A DNA stretch of 64,000 nt, from contig MU057809.1 in NCBI GenBank assembly GCA_013265495.1, positions 1,353,062 to 1,417,061 of the forward strand. The letters run 5' to 3'. Below the pieces are notes generated by a model. That model saw nothing but the letters and a program-made list of their open reading frames with translations. It ran no database searches and was not told where the DNA came from. Numbering within the stretch: position 1 is the first letter of the stretch; each line of letters begins with the position of its first letter. Source of the DNA: Vicugna vicugna. Its lineage: Eukaryota. Of this stretch, positions 10,308 through 52,085 are shown piece by piece. The position numbers were made by a program, and so were the translations under genes.

Positions 10308-10467
10308 NNNNNNNNNNNNNNNNNNNNNNNNNNNNNNNNNNNNNNNNNNNNNNNNNNNNNNNNNNNNNNNNNNNNNNNNNNNNNNNNNNNNNNNNNNNNN
10401 NNNNNNNNNNNNNNNNNNNNNNNNNNNNNNNNNNNNNNNNNNNNNNNNNNNNNNNNNNNNNNNNNNN
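10308..10467. other. Assembly gap (160 N)
   Basis: Run of N in the sequence. Confidence 1.
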
Positions 10468-17902: not shown

Positions 17903-18013
17903 CTGGCTGGGAGGGCTTGGCACGCTGGGGGGACGCGAGCCGCACGCTCTGCTCGATAGCAGCTTCGCCCGCGCTAGGTGCCCCCGGAAAGCCGCCTGCA
18001 GCACGGTAGCCGC
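17903..18013 (-). CDS. IQCE: IQCE exon 19 (IQ motif AATVLQAAFRGHLARAKL)
   Basis: 111 nt, bounded by cag and gtaacc. Confidence 0.95.
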
Positions 18014-22583: not shown

Positions 22584-22766
22584 CTGGTACACCTGCCACC
22601 GGCTCTGCAGGAGCCGGGCGGCGGCGTCTCTCCTCCCTGCAGAGCAGGCGGAGGGCGGTCGGGAGGGGCCGCCCTCTCTCCAGTCACTGTCGGGCCCCGG
22701 CTCCGGCTCCGAGTCTGGCTGGGAGGGGCTGACGGCGGGGCTGGGGGGCCGGGGTTCTTCCTGGGT
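22584..22766 (-). CDS. IQCE: IQCE exon 17 (TQEEPRPPSP...GRRDAAARLLQSRWQVYQ)
   Basis: 183 nt, phase 0-0, bounded by cag and gtgagc. Contains the first IQ-like motif. Confidence 0.93.
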
Positions 22767-25700
22767 CTGCAGAAAAGCCAAGGTGTGACAGGCGTCAGAG
22801 CGGCAGCGGGGAGGGCCCCGGGCGGGGCGGCAGGACATCAGGGCCGCGCTTGACCTGACGCGGGGAAGCTTATCAGACTAGACTTTCTGATTTACAGGAA
22901 AACCTGTGTCCTCACCGCTCAGCGTGTCAGACGACAAAGAAGTCTCTGGAGAAACAACATGTTCGCTAGTGAACAGGGTGACGCTGGGTTTGGTCAGCCC
23001 GGGGGCTCCATCCGGCAGGGCTCCCCGCGGGAGGAGGGCGGTCGCCCGCCAAGTGTCCGGGAGGCGGCTGGCTCCCACAGCCGAAGCGCACTTCCCCAGC
23101 TCAGCACATCTGTGCGCTAGCGCAAGAATGACCTGCTTCTCCGGGGTCCTTTTTCGGTCTTTTATAGCCCAATGCTGGACTACACGAACGGGACTTCTGA
23201 GATGAAAGGCTTGGATTTTAAGGCAGAAAGAAGCAAGAACTGCTGCTGTGGCCATCAGGACATTACTGACTTCTGCCACTGAAGGGGCCAGATTCATTAC
23301 CTACAGAGCACCTTCCCATAAGCATAAACACTTGGACGTGTCCTCACGTGGAGGGTGGAAGGCCAGCTCAGCGCAGACGCCCTTCTCAGTGGAGGAGGCC
23401 CCGTGAAGAGATGCCGTTGCAAGCGCTCTGAGTCCGTGCCCTGTGAGGCCGCGAAGCTGCAACCCCACGCCCGGCCCAGGAGGCCTGCCCTCCGACTAGG
23501 CACCGTGCCCCGAGCCAATCAGCCGCTGTCATCACTCTCCAGGCTGCTCCAAGTTACTTCTGCCAAGGTTCCCCACACAGCCTCTAAGACAAGCCTCGTC
23601 TCCCCTCCTCCCCGACCCAGCACAGCTCCAGCCCTCTGCTCCATGGAGGAGTCCGTTCCGCGTGGCCTGTGCTGCTGTGAGCAAGAAGGCAAAACCCGTG
23701 ACTTAGAAGATAAAGAAAGACAAATTTACTCAAAGAACTCCTGCCAGACAGCTGGAAGGATTTCAACTTTGATACATACAAAAATTCCTCGAAGCGCTAT
23801 TAAAAACGGACCCATGTCACCTTGTTTAAACCTCTGATTACTCATCCACAGCCGAATGCTGGGAGCTGGTTCCCCTGTCTGGAGGAACACAGAATCTTCC
23901 CAATTAATTCCATTCTCTTTCCTTGAAATGGAAATGCTTTCCAAGCAGGGAAAAAACTCAAAACTAAACTTTGAAAATAAATATTGAGGGTAATTTTGAC
24001 ACCCAGCAAATCTCCTAACCCCGCCCCCAAACAGGGGAAAGGCAGACACTAAGGCTGCAGCCCCTTGAGGAAAAGGACTCTCATCGGGGTCTCTGCCGGC
24101 CCGGCCCCCGGCTCCCATGAGCCAGGGGTAACGGAGCTCAGGGAAAGGAGGGGAGCCTGCTGCACGGGCTGGACCCTGTCCAGTCGGTCAGCGCCGGAGG
24201 CCCTCAGGACAAGAGGCTACACCCGGCTCCTCTCCCGGGCGGGATCTGTGTCCAGTGGATGCATAGGGAGGAGGTCAGGGCTGAGATGACCTTTCCTCCG
24301 TCTCCAGGTCAGCACCTTGATAAGACACCAGGACACACTTGTTTTCCTTCTGTTCTTGGTGTCTGCGGAAGGCCTGAGCGGCAGGAGGGAGGAGTCCGCG
24401 AGAGCCAGAGGGATTCCTCAGACAAAGCTGTTATGTCACTTCCGGGGGACGTGGAGAATATTTTTCTCCCTAAGGGAAACATAACTTTTGGGGGTGTGAG
24501 CCTGATAAATGAGCACAGCCATCCACGTTCCCTGGTGTTGGGTGCCTCCCAGGGGTCAGGGCTGCCTGAGGCGGACAAGTCATAAGTCGGTCAGCACCAG
24601 GAGCACCTCACTTGGAAAGGAGATTTTCACAGCACCCGGACAGGGACACGGCACCTCCAGAAGACACACAGTGCAGCTCCGCCCACGACACGCCCCGGCC
24701 GTCAGCGGGTCCCCTCAGCCTCCCGGCATCCCCCTGGGGCCACCAGCGCAGGCATTCGGGGAAGCAGGCGTCTCCTGAAAACGGACCATGGTGCAGAGTG
24801 GCCCGGTTCCTGGACGCAGGGACAGTGGTTCTATGGCACCCAGAACGTTATCCAGAGCACTGGAAGCTCCACCATGGAAATGCGCCCACGTGGATAACAC
24901 AAGAAGTCTGCTTTAGCAAACGACAGCTTCAGAAGGGATGGAGGCGGACTCACACTGTCCAGTCCACCCTGGCCAGCAGGACACGCGGGATCGCGGGCAC
25001 GGCACGAGCGCCGGGGGCTCCTGCTAGCACGCGCCAAGAGAGCCACCTTCTTTGGCCTATCGGTGGCGCTGTGGTGCTCCTCAGCGTCCCCAGATCCCCT
25101 GTCAGCTCTTCCTGAGCCGGAGATGCAGCACCTGCAGCGTCTTCGGCTAGAAGATTCCAGCTAAACAAGAAAGCCTTGGAAGGGGGGGCCAGTCCAGAGT
25201 AAAAAAAAAAAAAAACCCTTCTGTTTTCAGCTCTCAGCAGATAACTCCATGCTGAGCCTGGGACGCCTTCCTTCTGGTGGCCAGAGACAGTCCGGTCAGG
25301 ATCCTGGCTCCCGAAGCAACAGAACTCTTGGCTAAAAGGTGTCCTAGGTGAAGCCCCGCCGCCCAAGGGGACTTGGCGTGTCACTCGAACCTTCAGTTGG
25401 GGCCGCAGAAGAGGGACGGCAGAGGGGCTGCGGCACTGACTGTCCCTCCCCGCGTGCCCCGGGCGGGCCGCCCCGCCAGCTGGCTCTCCCATTGCGCACG
25501 CACGCCCCACGGCTCTCCTGGAGCAGGCTGCAGCCGCGGGTTCCAATCCCTCAGTTACTGGTTTTCTGTATTAACAGATACAGGATCATACCTGCCATCT
25601 GGAGAATCCACTAATTGGGAAAAAAGGATTTGTGAGGAGGCACATTCTAGCCACCAGAAGTCTGAGTGCAGGTAGCACTGGGCCAGCGGGAACCAAAGGG

Positions 25701-26394: not shown

Positions 26395-26854
26395 CTAAAG
26401 TGGGACGGGAAAAAAGGACTCCTTACTGGTCGCCATGCTGTGTAAGACGGCTGTACGTGACAGGAGGGGTGGCAGCCTGTGATGTGGGCACCGGCCAGCA
26501 CCCGACTGCCCTGGGGACCGCACCGGAGACCCCACTGGGCCCCACGCCTGGCACAAGTAGGTAGGAGCGGAACAAGCACCAATTGCTTGAATGATGAGTA
26601 AGAGTCACTGGGGGTCTTTAATGGAAGGAAACACGACTCTTGTCCTCGCCACAGATTTTAAAGGCAAAGCGAAGATAATTCTGTGCTGTGACCTGCCCCT
26701 ACTGATTTACCTGAATTCTAGCCTTCTGACAAAATCTAGTCACATTTATTCTGAAAATAAAGTCTTTACTTCATCTCAGTAATTTGTTTCTCACTAACTA
26801 CTCTGAGTGCTAAGTATTTCTGCTTAGATTTCTAATCTGCTGGTTTTGGGTGAT

Positions 26855-28740: not shown

Positions 28741-28796
28741 AGCAGGCCCTCTCCCCGAGGCCAGGCACCAGCGGTGCCGCACAACGGACAACGTAC

Positions 28797-29005
28797 TCCT
28801 TTTCCTGCAGCTGGGTGTGCAGGGCATTCCGCTCGCCTTTCAGACTCTTCACCGCCCCCCGCAGACGCTCGCTCTCCTCCTGCCGGTCCTGCCGGTCTGG
28901 GCGCATCTGCCGGGGCCCCACGGAGCTGGACGTGGAGTGAGCAGGAGGGTTGGACCTGACCACCTCTGAGGCGTGGGATTTGAGGCTTTCCATCGAACTT
29001 ATTTT
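28797..29005 (-). CDS. IQCE: IQCE exon 14 (KISSMESLKSH...ERLRGAVKSLKGERNALHTQLQEK)
   Basis: 209 nt, bounded by cag and gtacgt. It is 9 nt longer than the human exon as recalled, with a visible DRQDRQ duplication. Confidence 0.93.
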
Positions 29006-32791: not shown

Positions 32792-33381
32792 GTGACTCCT
32801 GCCTGGCCCTTTACAGAGTTTGCCAACCCCCATTCTAAACGACTAGGGGGAAACAGAAAAAGGGGAGAGCGTGCCTGGCAGTGTCCGTGCTCAGCAGTGT
32901 CAGCGACTCACTGCAGGGGCCGGGGCCACAACCAAATCTATGACAGTGGCCACTCCATCCTGAGTCTGTTAAAAGCGCAATGTCGTCTCGGAAAGGGCCA
33001 AGGGGTACAGGAAATCGACCAGATAAGGAAACTCTGCTGTCTCTCCTAGGAAACCTGCGTGGCAAGGTGAACTCATACTTGGTACTAAGTGCCTTCCTGG
33101 AAGGAAGGTCTGCTTTGAAATTAGGTCTGTTTCCTAATGCTCTGCTGGAAACGTTAAGCAGTTTGAGCGCGGAACACGCTGTCCGGCGTCAGCGCGTGGC
33201 TGTAGCGAGGCCACAGCTGCACCGTCCCAGGGGGAAGCATCGGCTCTAGCCATGAACACAGCAGGGCGCTGCTCCTAAGTTTTGGGCAGTGTCTGCGGTC
33301 TCCACGCAAGGCCTGCACCACTGAGGGCAGCTGACCGGGAAGGCAACCCACAAAACATGGCTCCCAAAGAGAGGCTCATAC

Positions 33382-33431
33382 GTCTTCCCTGTCGTTTCAG
33401 AACTTGCCAGGAGAGTCTGGAGACGACGAGT
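33382..33431 (-). CDS. IQCE: IQCE exon 11 (TRRLQTLLASSETTGK)
   Basis: 50 nt, acceptor tttacag, donor gtatga. Confidence 0.92.
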
Positions 33432-33655
33432 CTGTAAACATCAAGGTAAAGTGCAGTAAATACAACACGAGACCAGCAGAGACCTTCCTCTGAGAACCCG
33501 GGGCTCAGTCCCAGCTTCTGCCCGGGCAGCAGGTAAGCGCTGTGTTCAAGCTGAGATGGACCAGAGGAGGTTCCCACGGCGCACGCAGCCAGGCCAGCAC
33601 GCACCCTCCCGCACTCTCCCAGCCCGCACCCTGCTCTGGGCGAGAGGGCACACAC

Positions 33656-33728
33656 CTCCTCGTAATACGTCTCCATGGCGACCCTCATCTCCTCCAAGTT
33701 GGTAGTCTTCATGTCAGTCTGCAGTTTG
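33656..33728 (-). CDS. IQCE: IQCE exon 10 (KLQTDMKTTNLEEMRVAMETYYEE)
   Basis: 73 nt, acceptor ttttcag, donor gtgtgt. It starts in phase 2, so it needs an upstream exon ending in phase 2. Confidence 0.95.
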
Positions 33729-35980
33729 CTGAAAACCCAAGTTCAGAGTTAACGTGGCAGACTGCCAGCACTCCCAGGCACAGCAGGAGGAAGTGTGTTT
33801 CCCAGAACACCGGACAAGGACGGGCTTTGGAAGAGAGCCGGCTGGGTGGGTGGGGGGAGCCTGGGCCGGCCCTCAGCTGGCAGGAGGCCTTGCACAAGAC
33901 GGATGAGGAGAGAACTCCCGCCCCCACAGGGCCCTTCCATGTGGGACCAGCCACTTTCCAGGCTGAGGTAACAGACTCCCAGGGGACAGTCTCTGCTTTA
34001 AGAGGCTGTCTTTAAAAACTGGAGTAACTATGGAGAAAGACCTCAGGGTTAGACAGGACAAGTCATCTTTGGGGAAGGTGGGGAGATGTTCTTGTCCTCA
34101 ACTTTTCACAGACTTTAGGCACAAGGCTCTAACAGAGAAAGGAAAGTCAAGTCACCGAGTGCAGCAATCTGAACCAGAAAAGCCCAGCCAACAATAAATG
34201 CTTAAAGCCGACAATTTCAGCAGAGACAAAAGGGAGGGAGAGCTAGTGTATAAGAGGGTACACGGGGCAGTAGAAAGTGAAAACGTAGATTTCCTTAGAT
34301 AAACTCAGACACAGCGGGGAAAGACTCTCCCTTGGTGACCCAACAGCAGGAAAGGAGTCTGTGTAGCAGCACTAGAAACAGCGCCAGGGTAGGTGGGGCA
34401 CCGCACAGCAAAGACAGGCAGCCGGCGAGCGCGTGGCCGAGCGCTCACGGCTCGCATCGAGGTCCCTAAAGTTCACGCCGGAGTAAAACGTGGTCACAGA
34501 AGACGACGGAGGGAAAGCGTTTCTCCAGCGTAACAGGACAAGGAAGGATTAGGGAGAAGGAACACTGTTCCTTGGTGACGTCTGGAAGAGGGAGCAGAAA
34601 GGTGAAGCTGGGACAGGGACGTGGGCGGAGGATGGACGTGGGAAGCGCAGCTGCAGCTGCGGAGACGGCGAACGCGGGTGGTGAGAGCCGCAGGATGCGC
34701 GTGCACGTGCGTGTGCGCATGCGTGCAGCCAATCACCTGCCAACGGGACACCACCGCGTCAAGCTGACCGTCCCTGCGGTCCCCCCCAACGCCCCCAAGA
34801 CGCAGACCGCCCTGTCCGCAGGCTGGGTTGGGTGTCCCCTGCCGGCGGACAGGGCAGCATCCCCAGTCCTGCCCGTTCACTCGCCGGCGTCTCTTCCAGG
34901 CTCCAGGTGCAGCCAGGAGAGAGGGGGCCAGCCGTCCCGCCCACCAGAGCAGAGTGGAGAGTAAGCGGAGGTACGGGGGTGCCCCCACAAAGCTGCAGCC
35001 TTCCCCCTCCAGCCCACTCCACACTCGCACTGCGGACGGGGGACAGCACCTACACTGGGGTTTAGATACAAAACCCAGGAGCCGAGGCCCGTGACAACTC
35101 GGTCCACAGCACCGCGCGGGGAGGGAGCAGGGCTGGAGGCGGCCGGGCCTCCGGGCCCAGGCCAGGGCGGCCCTGAGGGCCCTCCCGCCCGGCTGCTTCC
35201 TGCTCCGTTAGTGCAGGCTCTGGGAGATAACACCCGTATATTCCCCAAAGAACACCCCGTTTTTTCTTCTTCAGCAGTCAAACAACTTTTTAATTGGATT
35301 TTAAGGTCGTTTTTCGTTATCCTAGTAATACTTGAATATATTTTCTTGTAAAAAGAATTATAGATGAAACTACAGCCTTTGACCTCACCCCTCTCAACTA
35401 AATGTCATTATCAACTTTGTGTATAGACCTTAGCTTACGCATGCACACACGTGTGCACAACCACAGAGATTCTGGCATTTGTACATCTGTTTACATAAGT
35501 GGGATCCTCCCACACATATCTTTCTGCAACCTGCATTTTTTTTTCCACTCAACAAACTGTCTTGCTACTCTGCCCAGCCAGTTCCTGCGGACTTATGTCC
35601 TCCTTCCAGGACAGGAACATACACGGTCCAGTTCCCCACCCTGCTGACAGATACTGATACGTTACCAGTTTGTGCTACTACAAGCCCCTTCAATGGAAAC
35701 TCCCTGTGCGCACACGCAAGTGCTTCTCCAGGGCAGATGAGGACGAGCACAAGCGTTCCGTCACAGGGCAGAGGTCTGGCAAAGGGCAGCAGAGGGAAAA
35801 CTGCCCCCACCCTTGCGATCTACAATGTCTACTTTTAACCCACTTTAATTTAAAAAAAAACACAGCATCAGAACAAAAATGCAAAAAGCCTTTTCTCTGT
35901 ACAAGCATTCATTATTTATAGAATTCTACATCCTCACCAAATTAATCATATAGACATTTCTAAACGTAGCTGTGCTATTT

Positions 35981-36017
<37 letters not shown>
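35981..36017. repeat. (TA)n microsatellite
   Basis: Direct reading; one interrupting C. Confidence 0.95.
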
Positions 36018-36020
<3 letters not shown>

Positions 36021-37168
36021 AAAATGTCTTTCGGAACATGTTTTGATACAGCGGTATTCCAATGTGACTGGCTTCACCTCAAGTTTCCCCCTAAACTGGA
36101 CAGCTATAAATATCCTTGTGCAGATGGCTTCTTGTACTGGATTTCTTTCTTGAGACATAGTCCTAAAAAGAGCATTATTCAACCACCAGCAGGCACAGTG
36201 TCACAGATCGTCACTGCACACGGTCACATCGTCCCGGCCTTCACAGAGCTAACGGTCACTCACTGTGAGCCGTTTGGGTAAAGCTCTCAACCTCAGCTTC
36301 CTGATTTTAAAAATGGGAATTGACGTCCCCATGACAAAAAGTCCAATGTGCAAACTGTACAACTCTACAGCGTTTAAGAGTTCTGTTATTTAAAAACTAC
36401 TTATTGTGGAAATACATCGATTGGTTCGCAAGCACTTAAGCATTTACTTTGTGCTGTTTCAGCAGAGAGCTAGGCTGTAATCCTTTATTCAGAGTAGACC
36501 GCTTTTATTCCTTATCGATTTGCAGGGATTCGTTGCATATTCTGGAGAAAAACTCCGCTGTGTTCATCAGCAGTGCCCGCCCTCTGCCCCCTCCCCCTTA
36601 CACTGACCCACTTTCCTTTGTAGTCTTATGGGTTTTATTGTAAATTTTAAATTTATGTTCTCAAACCCATTAATCACATCATTAATGTGATTTTGTGTTC
36701 AACGATCTCAACGTTGAATCCCTGCCGGTTTTCTTTTAGCATTTTTGATTTCTTATAAACATGTGTTTCCTTGACTCATACGAGATTTATTGCGATACGT
36801 TTTTCTCCAACTGCTATAGTTTATTGCCACGGCATTATGGTACAGTGGTTCCACTTTCCATAATTTTGTTCCATTCAATCTGTGATGTATTATTACACAA
36901 CACACAAGAGGGGTTCGTATGTGTTTTAAGGCCCTAATTATATTCCTGCTTTGTTTCCCTGTTTTAAATCAGTGTCATCTGTTAAGTCTGATGTGTTTTT
37001 TTTCAGTCCCCCTCTGTGATGACCCTTTCCTACAGCAGCCTTTGGGCCAATGGTAAGCCTACTAGCCTCCCCCCTGAGCCCCTCCTGAAACCTGCCACTC
37101 CTCTAAAGGCTGCTTCTAACACCAGATTTCAGAGGACAGGTTACCTGTTCTGCTGAGATTATACTCAC

Positions 37169-37219
37169 CCAGCCAGTGTCAGGCCTTTTCTCTGCCAGAG
37201 TCCGAACAAAATCCGGGCC
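37169..37219 (-). CDS. IQCE: IQCE exon 8 (GPDFVRTLAEKRPDTGW)
   Basis: 51 nt, bounded by cag and gtgagt; ends in phase 0. Confidence 0.95.
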
Positions 37220-37350
37220 CTGCAGTGAGCAGATGGAGAAATGAAGACAAGGTGTGGTTTAGCGCCCCCTCGTGAGTCGGCCGAGGGCCCTGCATCCCCC
37301 CCACCCCCCCCACCAGCATCTGGACACCGCCGCGGAGGCCAGGAACCTAC

Positions 37351-37464
37351 CCGGGACGGATCCAAGAGCTGTTCTATCTGCCGGTCCTTTCGGCTGTTTT
37401 CCTCTTCTAAGCGCCGAAGCTTTGTTCTCATCAGATCCACATCACTCTTCTGCATGTGTAATGA
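37351..37464 (-). CDS. IQCE: IQCE exon 7 (SLHMQKSDVDLMRTKLRRLEEENSRKDRQIEQLLDPSR)
   Basis: 114 nt, bounded by cag and gtaggt. Confidence 0.97.
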
Positions 37465-38989
37465 CTGAAGGACAGAAGGACCACACGTACGGACACACAC
37501 ACCGTGCACACAGACACCCAGTGAGACACTGAGTTGAGAGGCGTTTTAAAAGCCGTCTAGTTCCCAATCAGGGCACTGTGTGTGCGGGGGCGGGGGGGGT
37601 GAGGGAGGTCTGGATGTCACCTGCCTCATTAGGGGCAGGACCACCCACACAGCTAGGAACTGCCACCCAAAGCGCCAACAGCACCCACCCCCGCCAGCCG
37701 CAAACGCTGCTCCACAAATCAGTCCTGTCAGCAGCGAGTCTGGAAGGTGCCAACACGACGTGTTCTCCACGTCCGCGTGGGAAAGCCCATGTTTCTGACA
37801 CCACACCTCATCATAGTCTAATGTCCTTTTAAAATTCTTCTCAACTAAGGCTCAGTTAGTCCGAGCTATGGTTCCCGAACGCTTATCTGTGGATGAATTT
37901 TTCACCAGCCCGTGGTGAGTTTAGAAGAAAGACTATCAATTTTTCACAAAACGAAGTTTATTTAATGTTTACAACTCTCCTGTATTTTGAAATTGTGTCC
38001 TTCCTACTGTTTTGGACACATACAGTCCTTTTATGAAATGGTGATGGAAGGGTTAGGGTATTCCAAAGTTTTGTTTTCAATGTCCTCACTTGAAAAAGCC
38101 TTTTCCTTGTCTGTGAAGCCACACAACCTGAAAGTGTACGGTTAAGACCGTGCTCAGAAGCCTCATGGGGAAACGGCCGCACAGGTCGGCCAGTGCTACA
38201 GTTACCCCACTTCCAGCATCGGCCCGCACCCGAATTAGCCAGTTATCTTGGAGGCGTCCTTCTCCTTTCAAGGGGCTTGTGGTGCTCAGAAGAGTCTGAA
38301 TGTCTGAACAAACCCAGCTGCCACCACTGAAAAGACAATTCAAAGTGTGCGTCCCACTGAGGGATGCCTGGAAAGCCAGCCACATGCCCACAGTTGGCAG
38401 GAGAGATGCCTGGCTCTTGATGAGTGTTCAGTGAGTAAGTCAGTTAATACACAGTCATTAGGAAAGAGAAGAAATCCGGTCATGGGAATTCTGCTTCCAG
38501 AAATACGGAGTACACTCACTTTTCCCTATTCCTCCTGCTCAGTACAGCTAAAAACCTCGGTCACTGCATGTAAAGCAAACACAAGAAGACTCGGAAAGGT
38601 GGAGAGGAGGAGGAAGACTAGCCGGGACCTCAGGATCCAGACAACGACAAGCAGGGGGCTCCTCCAGTTCTCCTTTGCCTCGCATGCCCTGGCCTGGCTG
38701 CTGCAGGGGCCCACGCTGGACAAGGCAGTGGGCAGGGACAGGAAAAGCCTCTGCTCTCTGGCAAAAAGGGGCAGCCTAACAAGGCAGAAAATGCACGTAC
38801 AGTAACTGCTCCGGCCCAGGGAAAGAGCGCAGGAAACACTGCTGGGGAGCCTGGACCCCAGCCTGCCAGGCTGCAGCAAGGTGCCCACCCCTCCTCACTG
38901 GGGCTGGGGGTGGGGGAAGGTGTGTCAGAGGAGGCCAACTGGAGGGCCAGGACTCTCACCATCCAGTGGTGACCAGGTCACACACAAAG

Positions 38990-51917: not shown

Positions 51918-51953
51918 CGTCTCCGAGGCCGGCTCCCCGGTGCCCAGCGACAT
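51918..51953 (-). CDS. IQCE: IQCE exon 1 coding part (MSLGTGEPASET)
   Basis: 36 nt, Kozak gccgccATG, donor gtaagc. Human equivalent MFLGTGEPALDT. Confidence 0.95.
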
Positions 51954-52071
51954 GGCGGCGGCGCTGCCCGATCGCCCCCGGCCGCTGCGGCGCGGCCGTC
52001 CGTTTCCCGGGCTCCGCCGGCCGCCCGCCTGCCGCAGCCTCCGGGCCAGCCCGCGCGCCCGCCGCGCCCCC

Positions 52072-52085
52072 GCTGCCATGGCAAC
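52072..52085. promoter_or_regulatory. RFX X-box GCTGCCATGGCAAC
   Basis: 13/14 match to the palindromic X-box GTTGCCATGGCAAC, 119 bp upstream of the IQCE ATG. X-boxes are characteristic of ciliary gene promoters. Confidence 0.75.

Follow-up and report, generated by a model that had tools for sequence, protein, structure and literature searches.

The stretch of DNA analyzed here (the window: 64,000 nucleotides of the Vicugna vicugna assembly GCA_013265495.1, contig MU057809.1, positions 1,353,062 to 1,417,061 of the forward strand) carries a gene for IQCE from which the ninth exon is missing, and the question raised by this locus is whether the animal or only its assembly lacks the exon. The sequence-only reading of the window had left a recent loss, a polymorphism and an assembly deletion standing side by side. 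The analysis described below favors the last of these: rather than a gene loss, the absence of exon 9 is most probably a dropout that arose locally during assembly, at a G-quadruplex tract of very high GC content. A loss that is fixed or shared by the lineage is contradicted by an alpaca genome (locus L004) in which the exon is intact, by six RefSeq isoforms and by an index of sequencing runs.

IQCE in the window and its missing exon

The gene was identified by searching a 70-residue exon (28796–29005) against protein representatives, which led to IQCE of Camelus ferus (P0001), and a follow-up protein search with IQCE led to the mammalian family. By tblastn with P0001, P0027, P0029, P0030 and P0149, the whole IQCE orthologue was placed on the minus strand as a series of collinear exons from 52079 to 14086. 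Isoform X2 of Vicugna pacos (P0027) matches the window with 100% identity within exons (e.g., 54/54 residues in exon 1), and the Camelus IQCE proteins match it more weakly than P0027, which points to alpaca or a South American camelid nearly identical to it as the origin of the window. The IQ calmodulin-binding motif PF00612 is a precomputed domain of P0027, whose residues 597–720 map to 18016–16507, a placement carried over from the protein and not from a rescan of the window translation. Apart from exon 9, every exon is intact and translates to the alpaca protein without a difference, and signs of relaxed constraint (stops, frameshifts or lost splice sites) are lacking. The features around the missing exon are collected in Table 1.

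Table 1. Features of IQCE between exons 7 and 11 in the window
Feature	Positions	Strand	Remarks
IQCE exon 7	37351..37467	minus	ends ...SLHMQKSDVDLMRTKLRRLEEENSRKDRQIEQLLDPSR; approximate boundaries, from tblastn
IQCE exon 8	37169..37219	minus	51 nt, encodes GPDFVRTLAEKRPDTGW; AG acceptor, GTGAGT donor, ends in phase 0
Intron 8	34739..37168	minus	collinear with alpaca (99.8%), dromedary and oryx
Exon 9 relic	34732..34738	minus	acceptor AG at 34738–34737, exon bases 1–5 at 34736–34732
Junction	34727..34731	minus	T at 34731 in place of 128 nt; mismatch at 34727
Rest of intron 9	33730..34726	minus	99.9% identical to alpaca L004 from 17980
IQCE exon 10	33657..33729	minus	73 nt; first base completes the codon begun in exon 9
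IQCE exon 11, short form	33384..33433	minus	TRRLQTLLASSETTGK; longer form reaches about 33351

With camelid IQCE as the tblastn query, the residues up to ...RPDTGW lie at 37222–37169 and those of ...KLQTDM... at 33730–33657, with a hole between them. From the phase 0 end of exon 8 and the two codon bases lacking at exon 10, it had been deduced that an exon of 3n + 2 nt is needed here; the boundaries agree with this deduction, and the expected length of 71 nt is exactly that of exon 9 in Vicugna pacos. The frame arithmetic also holds: splicing of exon 8 to exon 10 breaks the frame and leads to an early stop, while splicing of exon 8 to exon 11 stays in frame and removes 48 residues (71 + 73 = 144 nt = 48 codons). 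The assembly gap reported elsewhere in the window is indeed there, and this run of 160 N at 10308–10467, the sole one in the window, lies downstream of IQCE.

The 23 residues between exons 8 and 10, VINGLKQRILKLEQQCKEKDSTI, gave no match in the window (tblastn, E ≤ 10), and a scan of the 3.4-kb interval for an open 3n + 2 exon with an AG/GT pair yielded no usable exon. A 32-nt open candidate at 35842–35811 was weak, and its peptide is unrelated to that of exon 9. A peptide of the form VING... at about 36698–36570 is like the start of the exon 9 peptide; it was rejected as a chance match because it has no acceptor, lies within an AT-rich repeat common to oryx, and is far from the orthologous site. 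The 237-aa open reading frame that runs across the junction (34497–35207) had no homologues in the protein collection. In the whole 2.03-Gb assembly, a query covering exons 8–10 recovered exons 8 and 10 (E values of 5.7e-4 and 3.7e-7, respectively) and not exon 9, and neither the exon 9 peptide alone, a search proposed in the sequence-only reading, nor the missing 128 nt as DNA returned any candidate; exon 8, which is shorter than exon 9, was found in the whole-assembly search and provides the positive control. Thus, the earlier statement that the interval holds no exon 9 stands as far as a coding match is concerned, although it overlooked that the acceptor and the first five bases of the exon are kept at 34738–34732. 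Compared with the IQCE proteins of Vicugna pacos (XP_072799519–XP_072799527), with which the window shares the order and strand of all other exons, the window cannot encode VINGLKQRILKLEQQCKEKDSTI(N) because exon 9 is truncated to five bases.

Several other features of the gene were observed along the way. In the first coding exon (51918–52079, minus), a start that opens MAAGARRARG... precedes the one at MSLGTGEP by 42 codons. This exon is 100% identical to alpaca and just 78% identical to Camelus ferus, suggesting that the N-terminal extension evolves fast. The longer form of exon 11 (33351–33383, minus) adds YEPLFGSHVL; dromedary models use it, as do the alpaca isoforms X1, X3 and X6, whereas alpaca isoform X4 (P0038) skips both exon 10 and exon 11. 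The C-terminus of Camelus ferus isoform X6 (P0001) matches the window at 91% in 22917–23300 and 22687–22770 (minus), unspliced, after the exon at 26396–26301; a transcript with this alternative 3′ end would be without the IQ motifs, and the model has the look of intron retention. Finally, intron 8 contains a (TA)n microsatellite at 35977–36025, which produced an additional megablast hit when the window was aligned with the newer alpaca assembly.

Exon 9 in other genomes and the nature of the lost piece

The IQCE locus was compared with those of Oryx dammah (L003), Vicugna pacos (GCA_048564905.1, chromosome CM108737.1; L004) and Camelus dromedarius (GCA_000803125.3; L005), with window positions 33717–33752 left out of these alignments. 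The interval between exons 8 and 10 is collinear with that of oryx throughout, the old AT-rich repeat block of intron 8 included, placing the expected site of exon 9 at about 34736. In alpaca, L004 15351–17847 corresponds to window 37230–34732 with 99.8% identity and L004 17976–18946 to window 34730–33760 with 99.9% identity, and the 128 nt in between (L004 17848–17975) are replaced in the window by the single T, exact identity resuming at 34726. Relative to L004, the lost piece takes in bases 6–71 of exon 9 and, donor included, reaches 62 nt into intron 9. Exon 9 itself is intact in L004 (17843–17913, 71 nt, encoding VINGLKQRILKLEQQCKEKDSTI, with an AG acceptor and a GTACGG donor) and is present at the collinear place in dromedary and oryx as well, so that the comparison with other camelid genomes proposed earlier gives an intact exon 9 both in alpaca GCA_048564905.1 and in dromedary. 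Along the 39-kb gene as a whole, the identity between the window and L004 is 99.88%, with 46 substitutions among 38,967 aligned bases and small gaps that add up to 11 bases; apart from the 128-nt piece no large difference separates them, and no other indel exceeds a few bases. A low-complexity stretch of about 56 nt at the exon 9 site had been considered as foreign sequence in place of the exon, but it is genuine camelid intron 9, present in both L004 and L005.

The composition of the lost piece is distinctive. Its GC content is 72% overall and 89% in the intron part, which consists of a (GGGGC)n run directly after the exon 9 donor in L004. No G-quadruplex motif in the 39-kb locus is longer than the one in this intron part (45 nt, 35 of them G), which also has one of the two most GC-rich 60-nt windows of the locus, only the promoter CpG island being higher. 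A G-run-rich tract follows the exon 9 donor immediately in all three genomes (L004 17914–17962, L005 about 17947–17985, and L003 18545–18580). Close to 5′ splice sites, G-runs often serve as intronic enhancers of splicing, and the conservation of this tract in alpaca, dromedary and oryx may be functional.

At the protein level, all six current RefSeq isoforms of alpaca (X1–X6, XP_072799519–XP_072799527; P0148, P0027, P0146, P0038, P0028 and P0147) contain exon 9, and the exon 9 peptide occurs in essentially all of the 141 fetched IQCE proteins that bear the exon 8 motif, the three misses of the regular expression being a faulty model (P0149), a fragmentary protein and one variant spelling. The faulty model is the older RefSeq alpaca protein XP_031532595.1, which lacks exon 9 and instead reads 21 codons into intron 8 (window 37168–37106, 38/39 residues identical) together with a few codons upstream of exon 10. 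These intron-derived residues are spurious and caused by the missing exon. Gene predictors behave in this manner when their input assembly lacks an exon, and the patched frame shows that exon 9 was already unavailable to an earlier annotation; the match does not fix the assembly from which P0149 was derived, as the flanking intron sequence is the same in any alpaca assembly.

A probable assembly dropout and its alternatives

Fourteen DNA sequencing runs contain 92–97% of the sampled words of 33300–37600, indicating that this interval as a whole is genuine camelid sequence. For the stretch across the junction (34640–34750), at least 20 runs, belonging to seven studies and five organisms (coded A, B, E, F and G), each hold six of the nine sampled words (0.67), and no run holds more. 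Since 57 of the 81 31-mers of this stretch (0.70) are common with the intact allele, the other 24 all spanning the junction, the observed share of 0.67 against the predicted 0.70 is what carriers of the intact allele would show. The junction of the window was thus seen in no indexed run, as judged from only nine sampled words and an index built on contigs. Run X1, a possible source of the assembled DNA, likewise has at most 0.67 of the sampled junction words, as it would have ranked first had it held the junction words. These shares are to be read with the properties of the index in mind: besides the small number of sampled words, the missing words are not named, contigs drop rare variants, and one private base difference alone could remove three sampled words.

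We favor the following course of events for the origin of the junction. About 128 nt at the boundary of exon 9 and intron 9 would have been dropped when the scaffold-level assembly was built, and the two sides then joined with a spurious base. The 89%-GC (GGGGC)n tract just after the exon 9 donor may have been poorly covered or poorly resolved by the sequencing chemistry, and exon 9 would have been lost along with it from the sixth base on, in which case the animal and its species would possess a normal IQCE including exon 9. A failure of coverage or of consensus in the assembly is the presumable cause. Errors of this class, in which older assemblies falsely lose exons where the sequence is GC-rich, have been documented by Kim et al. 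(2022, Genome Biol 23:204, PMC9516821), who attribute them to the poor coverage that Sanger and Illumina platforms give there. As in the cases described there, a conserved exon of IQCE is absent in a scaffold-level assembly and present in a newer chromosome-level assembly, the two assemblies being of the same or a nearly identical species; what is missing is repetitive and has a strongly elevated GC content, and an older annotation (P0149) gave a distorted model. In contrast to the 5′ exons, promoters and losses marked by N gaps stressed in that study, the exon missing from IQCE is internal and the join is seamless, without N, so that nothing in the sequence flags the error.

Two observations speak against such a dropout. 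Elsewhere in the 39-kb locus no assembly error is seen, not even in the promoter CpG island, which is equally GC-rich, so that a high GC content does not as a rule defeat this assembly, and the junction is not a clean collapse of a repeat but shows a filler base and a nearby mismatch, a form also taken by real end-joining deletions at G-quadruplex tracts. The same observations fit a real deletion, private to the sequenced animal or rare, and heterozygous or homozygous in it: replication would stall at the (GGGGC)n tract, and error-prone end joining would remove 128 nt and insert the filler base, leaving either a frameshifted transcript with an early stop (exon 8 to exon 10) or an in-frame one without 48 coiled-coil residues (exon 8 to exon 11). 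In agreement with such an event, the lost piece, which begins inside exon 9, includes the G4 motif that is strongest in the locus; the junction shows an untemplated base with a mismatch close by, as is often seen in real end-joining deletions; and the assembly of the remaining locus is essentially flawless. Deletions are known to cluster at G4 tracts, and G-quadruplex-associated deletions repaired by end joining are known from FANCJ/dog-1-deficient C. elegans; those deletions resemble the present one in size (roughly 100–300 nt), in covering the G4 tract and in their small junction filler, but the IQCE deletion is known from an assembly alone, its junction words occurring in no indexed sequencing run. 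In particular, no indexed run, X1 included, rises above the six of nine words expected of the intact allele, whereas a homozygous source would give a share of 1.0, and one would expect beforehand that sequence of 89% GC drops out of an assembly far more often than the single reference animal turns out to have a conserved ciliary gene with an exon destroyed by deletion. We therefore regard a real deletion in the sequenced animal as unlikely, although it is the main rival of the dropout.

A loss of exon 9 that is fixed or common in South American camelids has in its favor only the absence of the exon from this assembly and from the older RefSeq alpaca model, and it is highly improbable, as the exon is intact in GCA_048564905.1 between flanks that are 99.8–99.9% identical to the window, all current alpaca isoforms X1–X6 contain it, the junction words are absent from at least 20 runs of five organisms, and the exon is conserved across mammals and intact in dromedary. 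Equally hard to credit is that exon 9 has diverged or been overlooked within the interval, or lies on another scaffold of the same assembly. Short chance resemblances such as VING... might suggest it, but the collinear alignment with three genomes pins the site to 34736, where five exon bases are left, and nothing else emerged from tblastn at E ≤ 10, from the search for a usable 3n + 2 exon, or from the whole assembly.

Implications for camelid IQCE

Human loss of IQCE results in postaxial polydactyly; IQCE is reportedly listed among the polydactyly genes in one review, and polydactyly is a recognised congenital defect in camelids. The role assigned to the protein in the sequence-only reading, that IQCE and EFCAB7 tether EVC–EVC2, is as published: according to PMC10413113, citing Pusapati et al. 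2014, Hedgehog signalling relies on IQCE and EFCAB7 to recruit EVC–EVC2 to the EvC zone, at the base of the cilium. The polydactyly link in humans does not itself appear in that review.

Taken at face value, the window would describe a camelid in which a conserved gene of cilia and Hedgehog signalling no longer functions; the evidence speaks against this, and nothing here indicates that camelid IQCE differs from its known ciliary role. With no N gap to mark the error, this assembly will mislead annotation pipelines and screens for gene loss into reporting a broken or distorted IQCE, as was the case with XP_031532595.1, and for studies of limb defects in camelids the newer alpaca assembly is advisable for IQCE. 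If the deletion were true, a 127-bp G-quadruplex-associated deletion would exist on at least one chromosome, as a natural loss-of-function allele or as an in-frame allele lacking 48 residues, and on this less likely reading the sequenced animal would carry an allele to be considered as a candidate for polydactyly in camelids.
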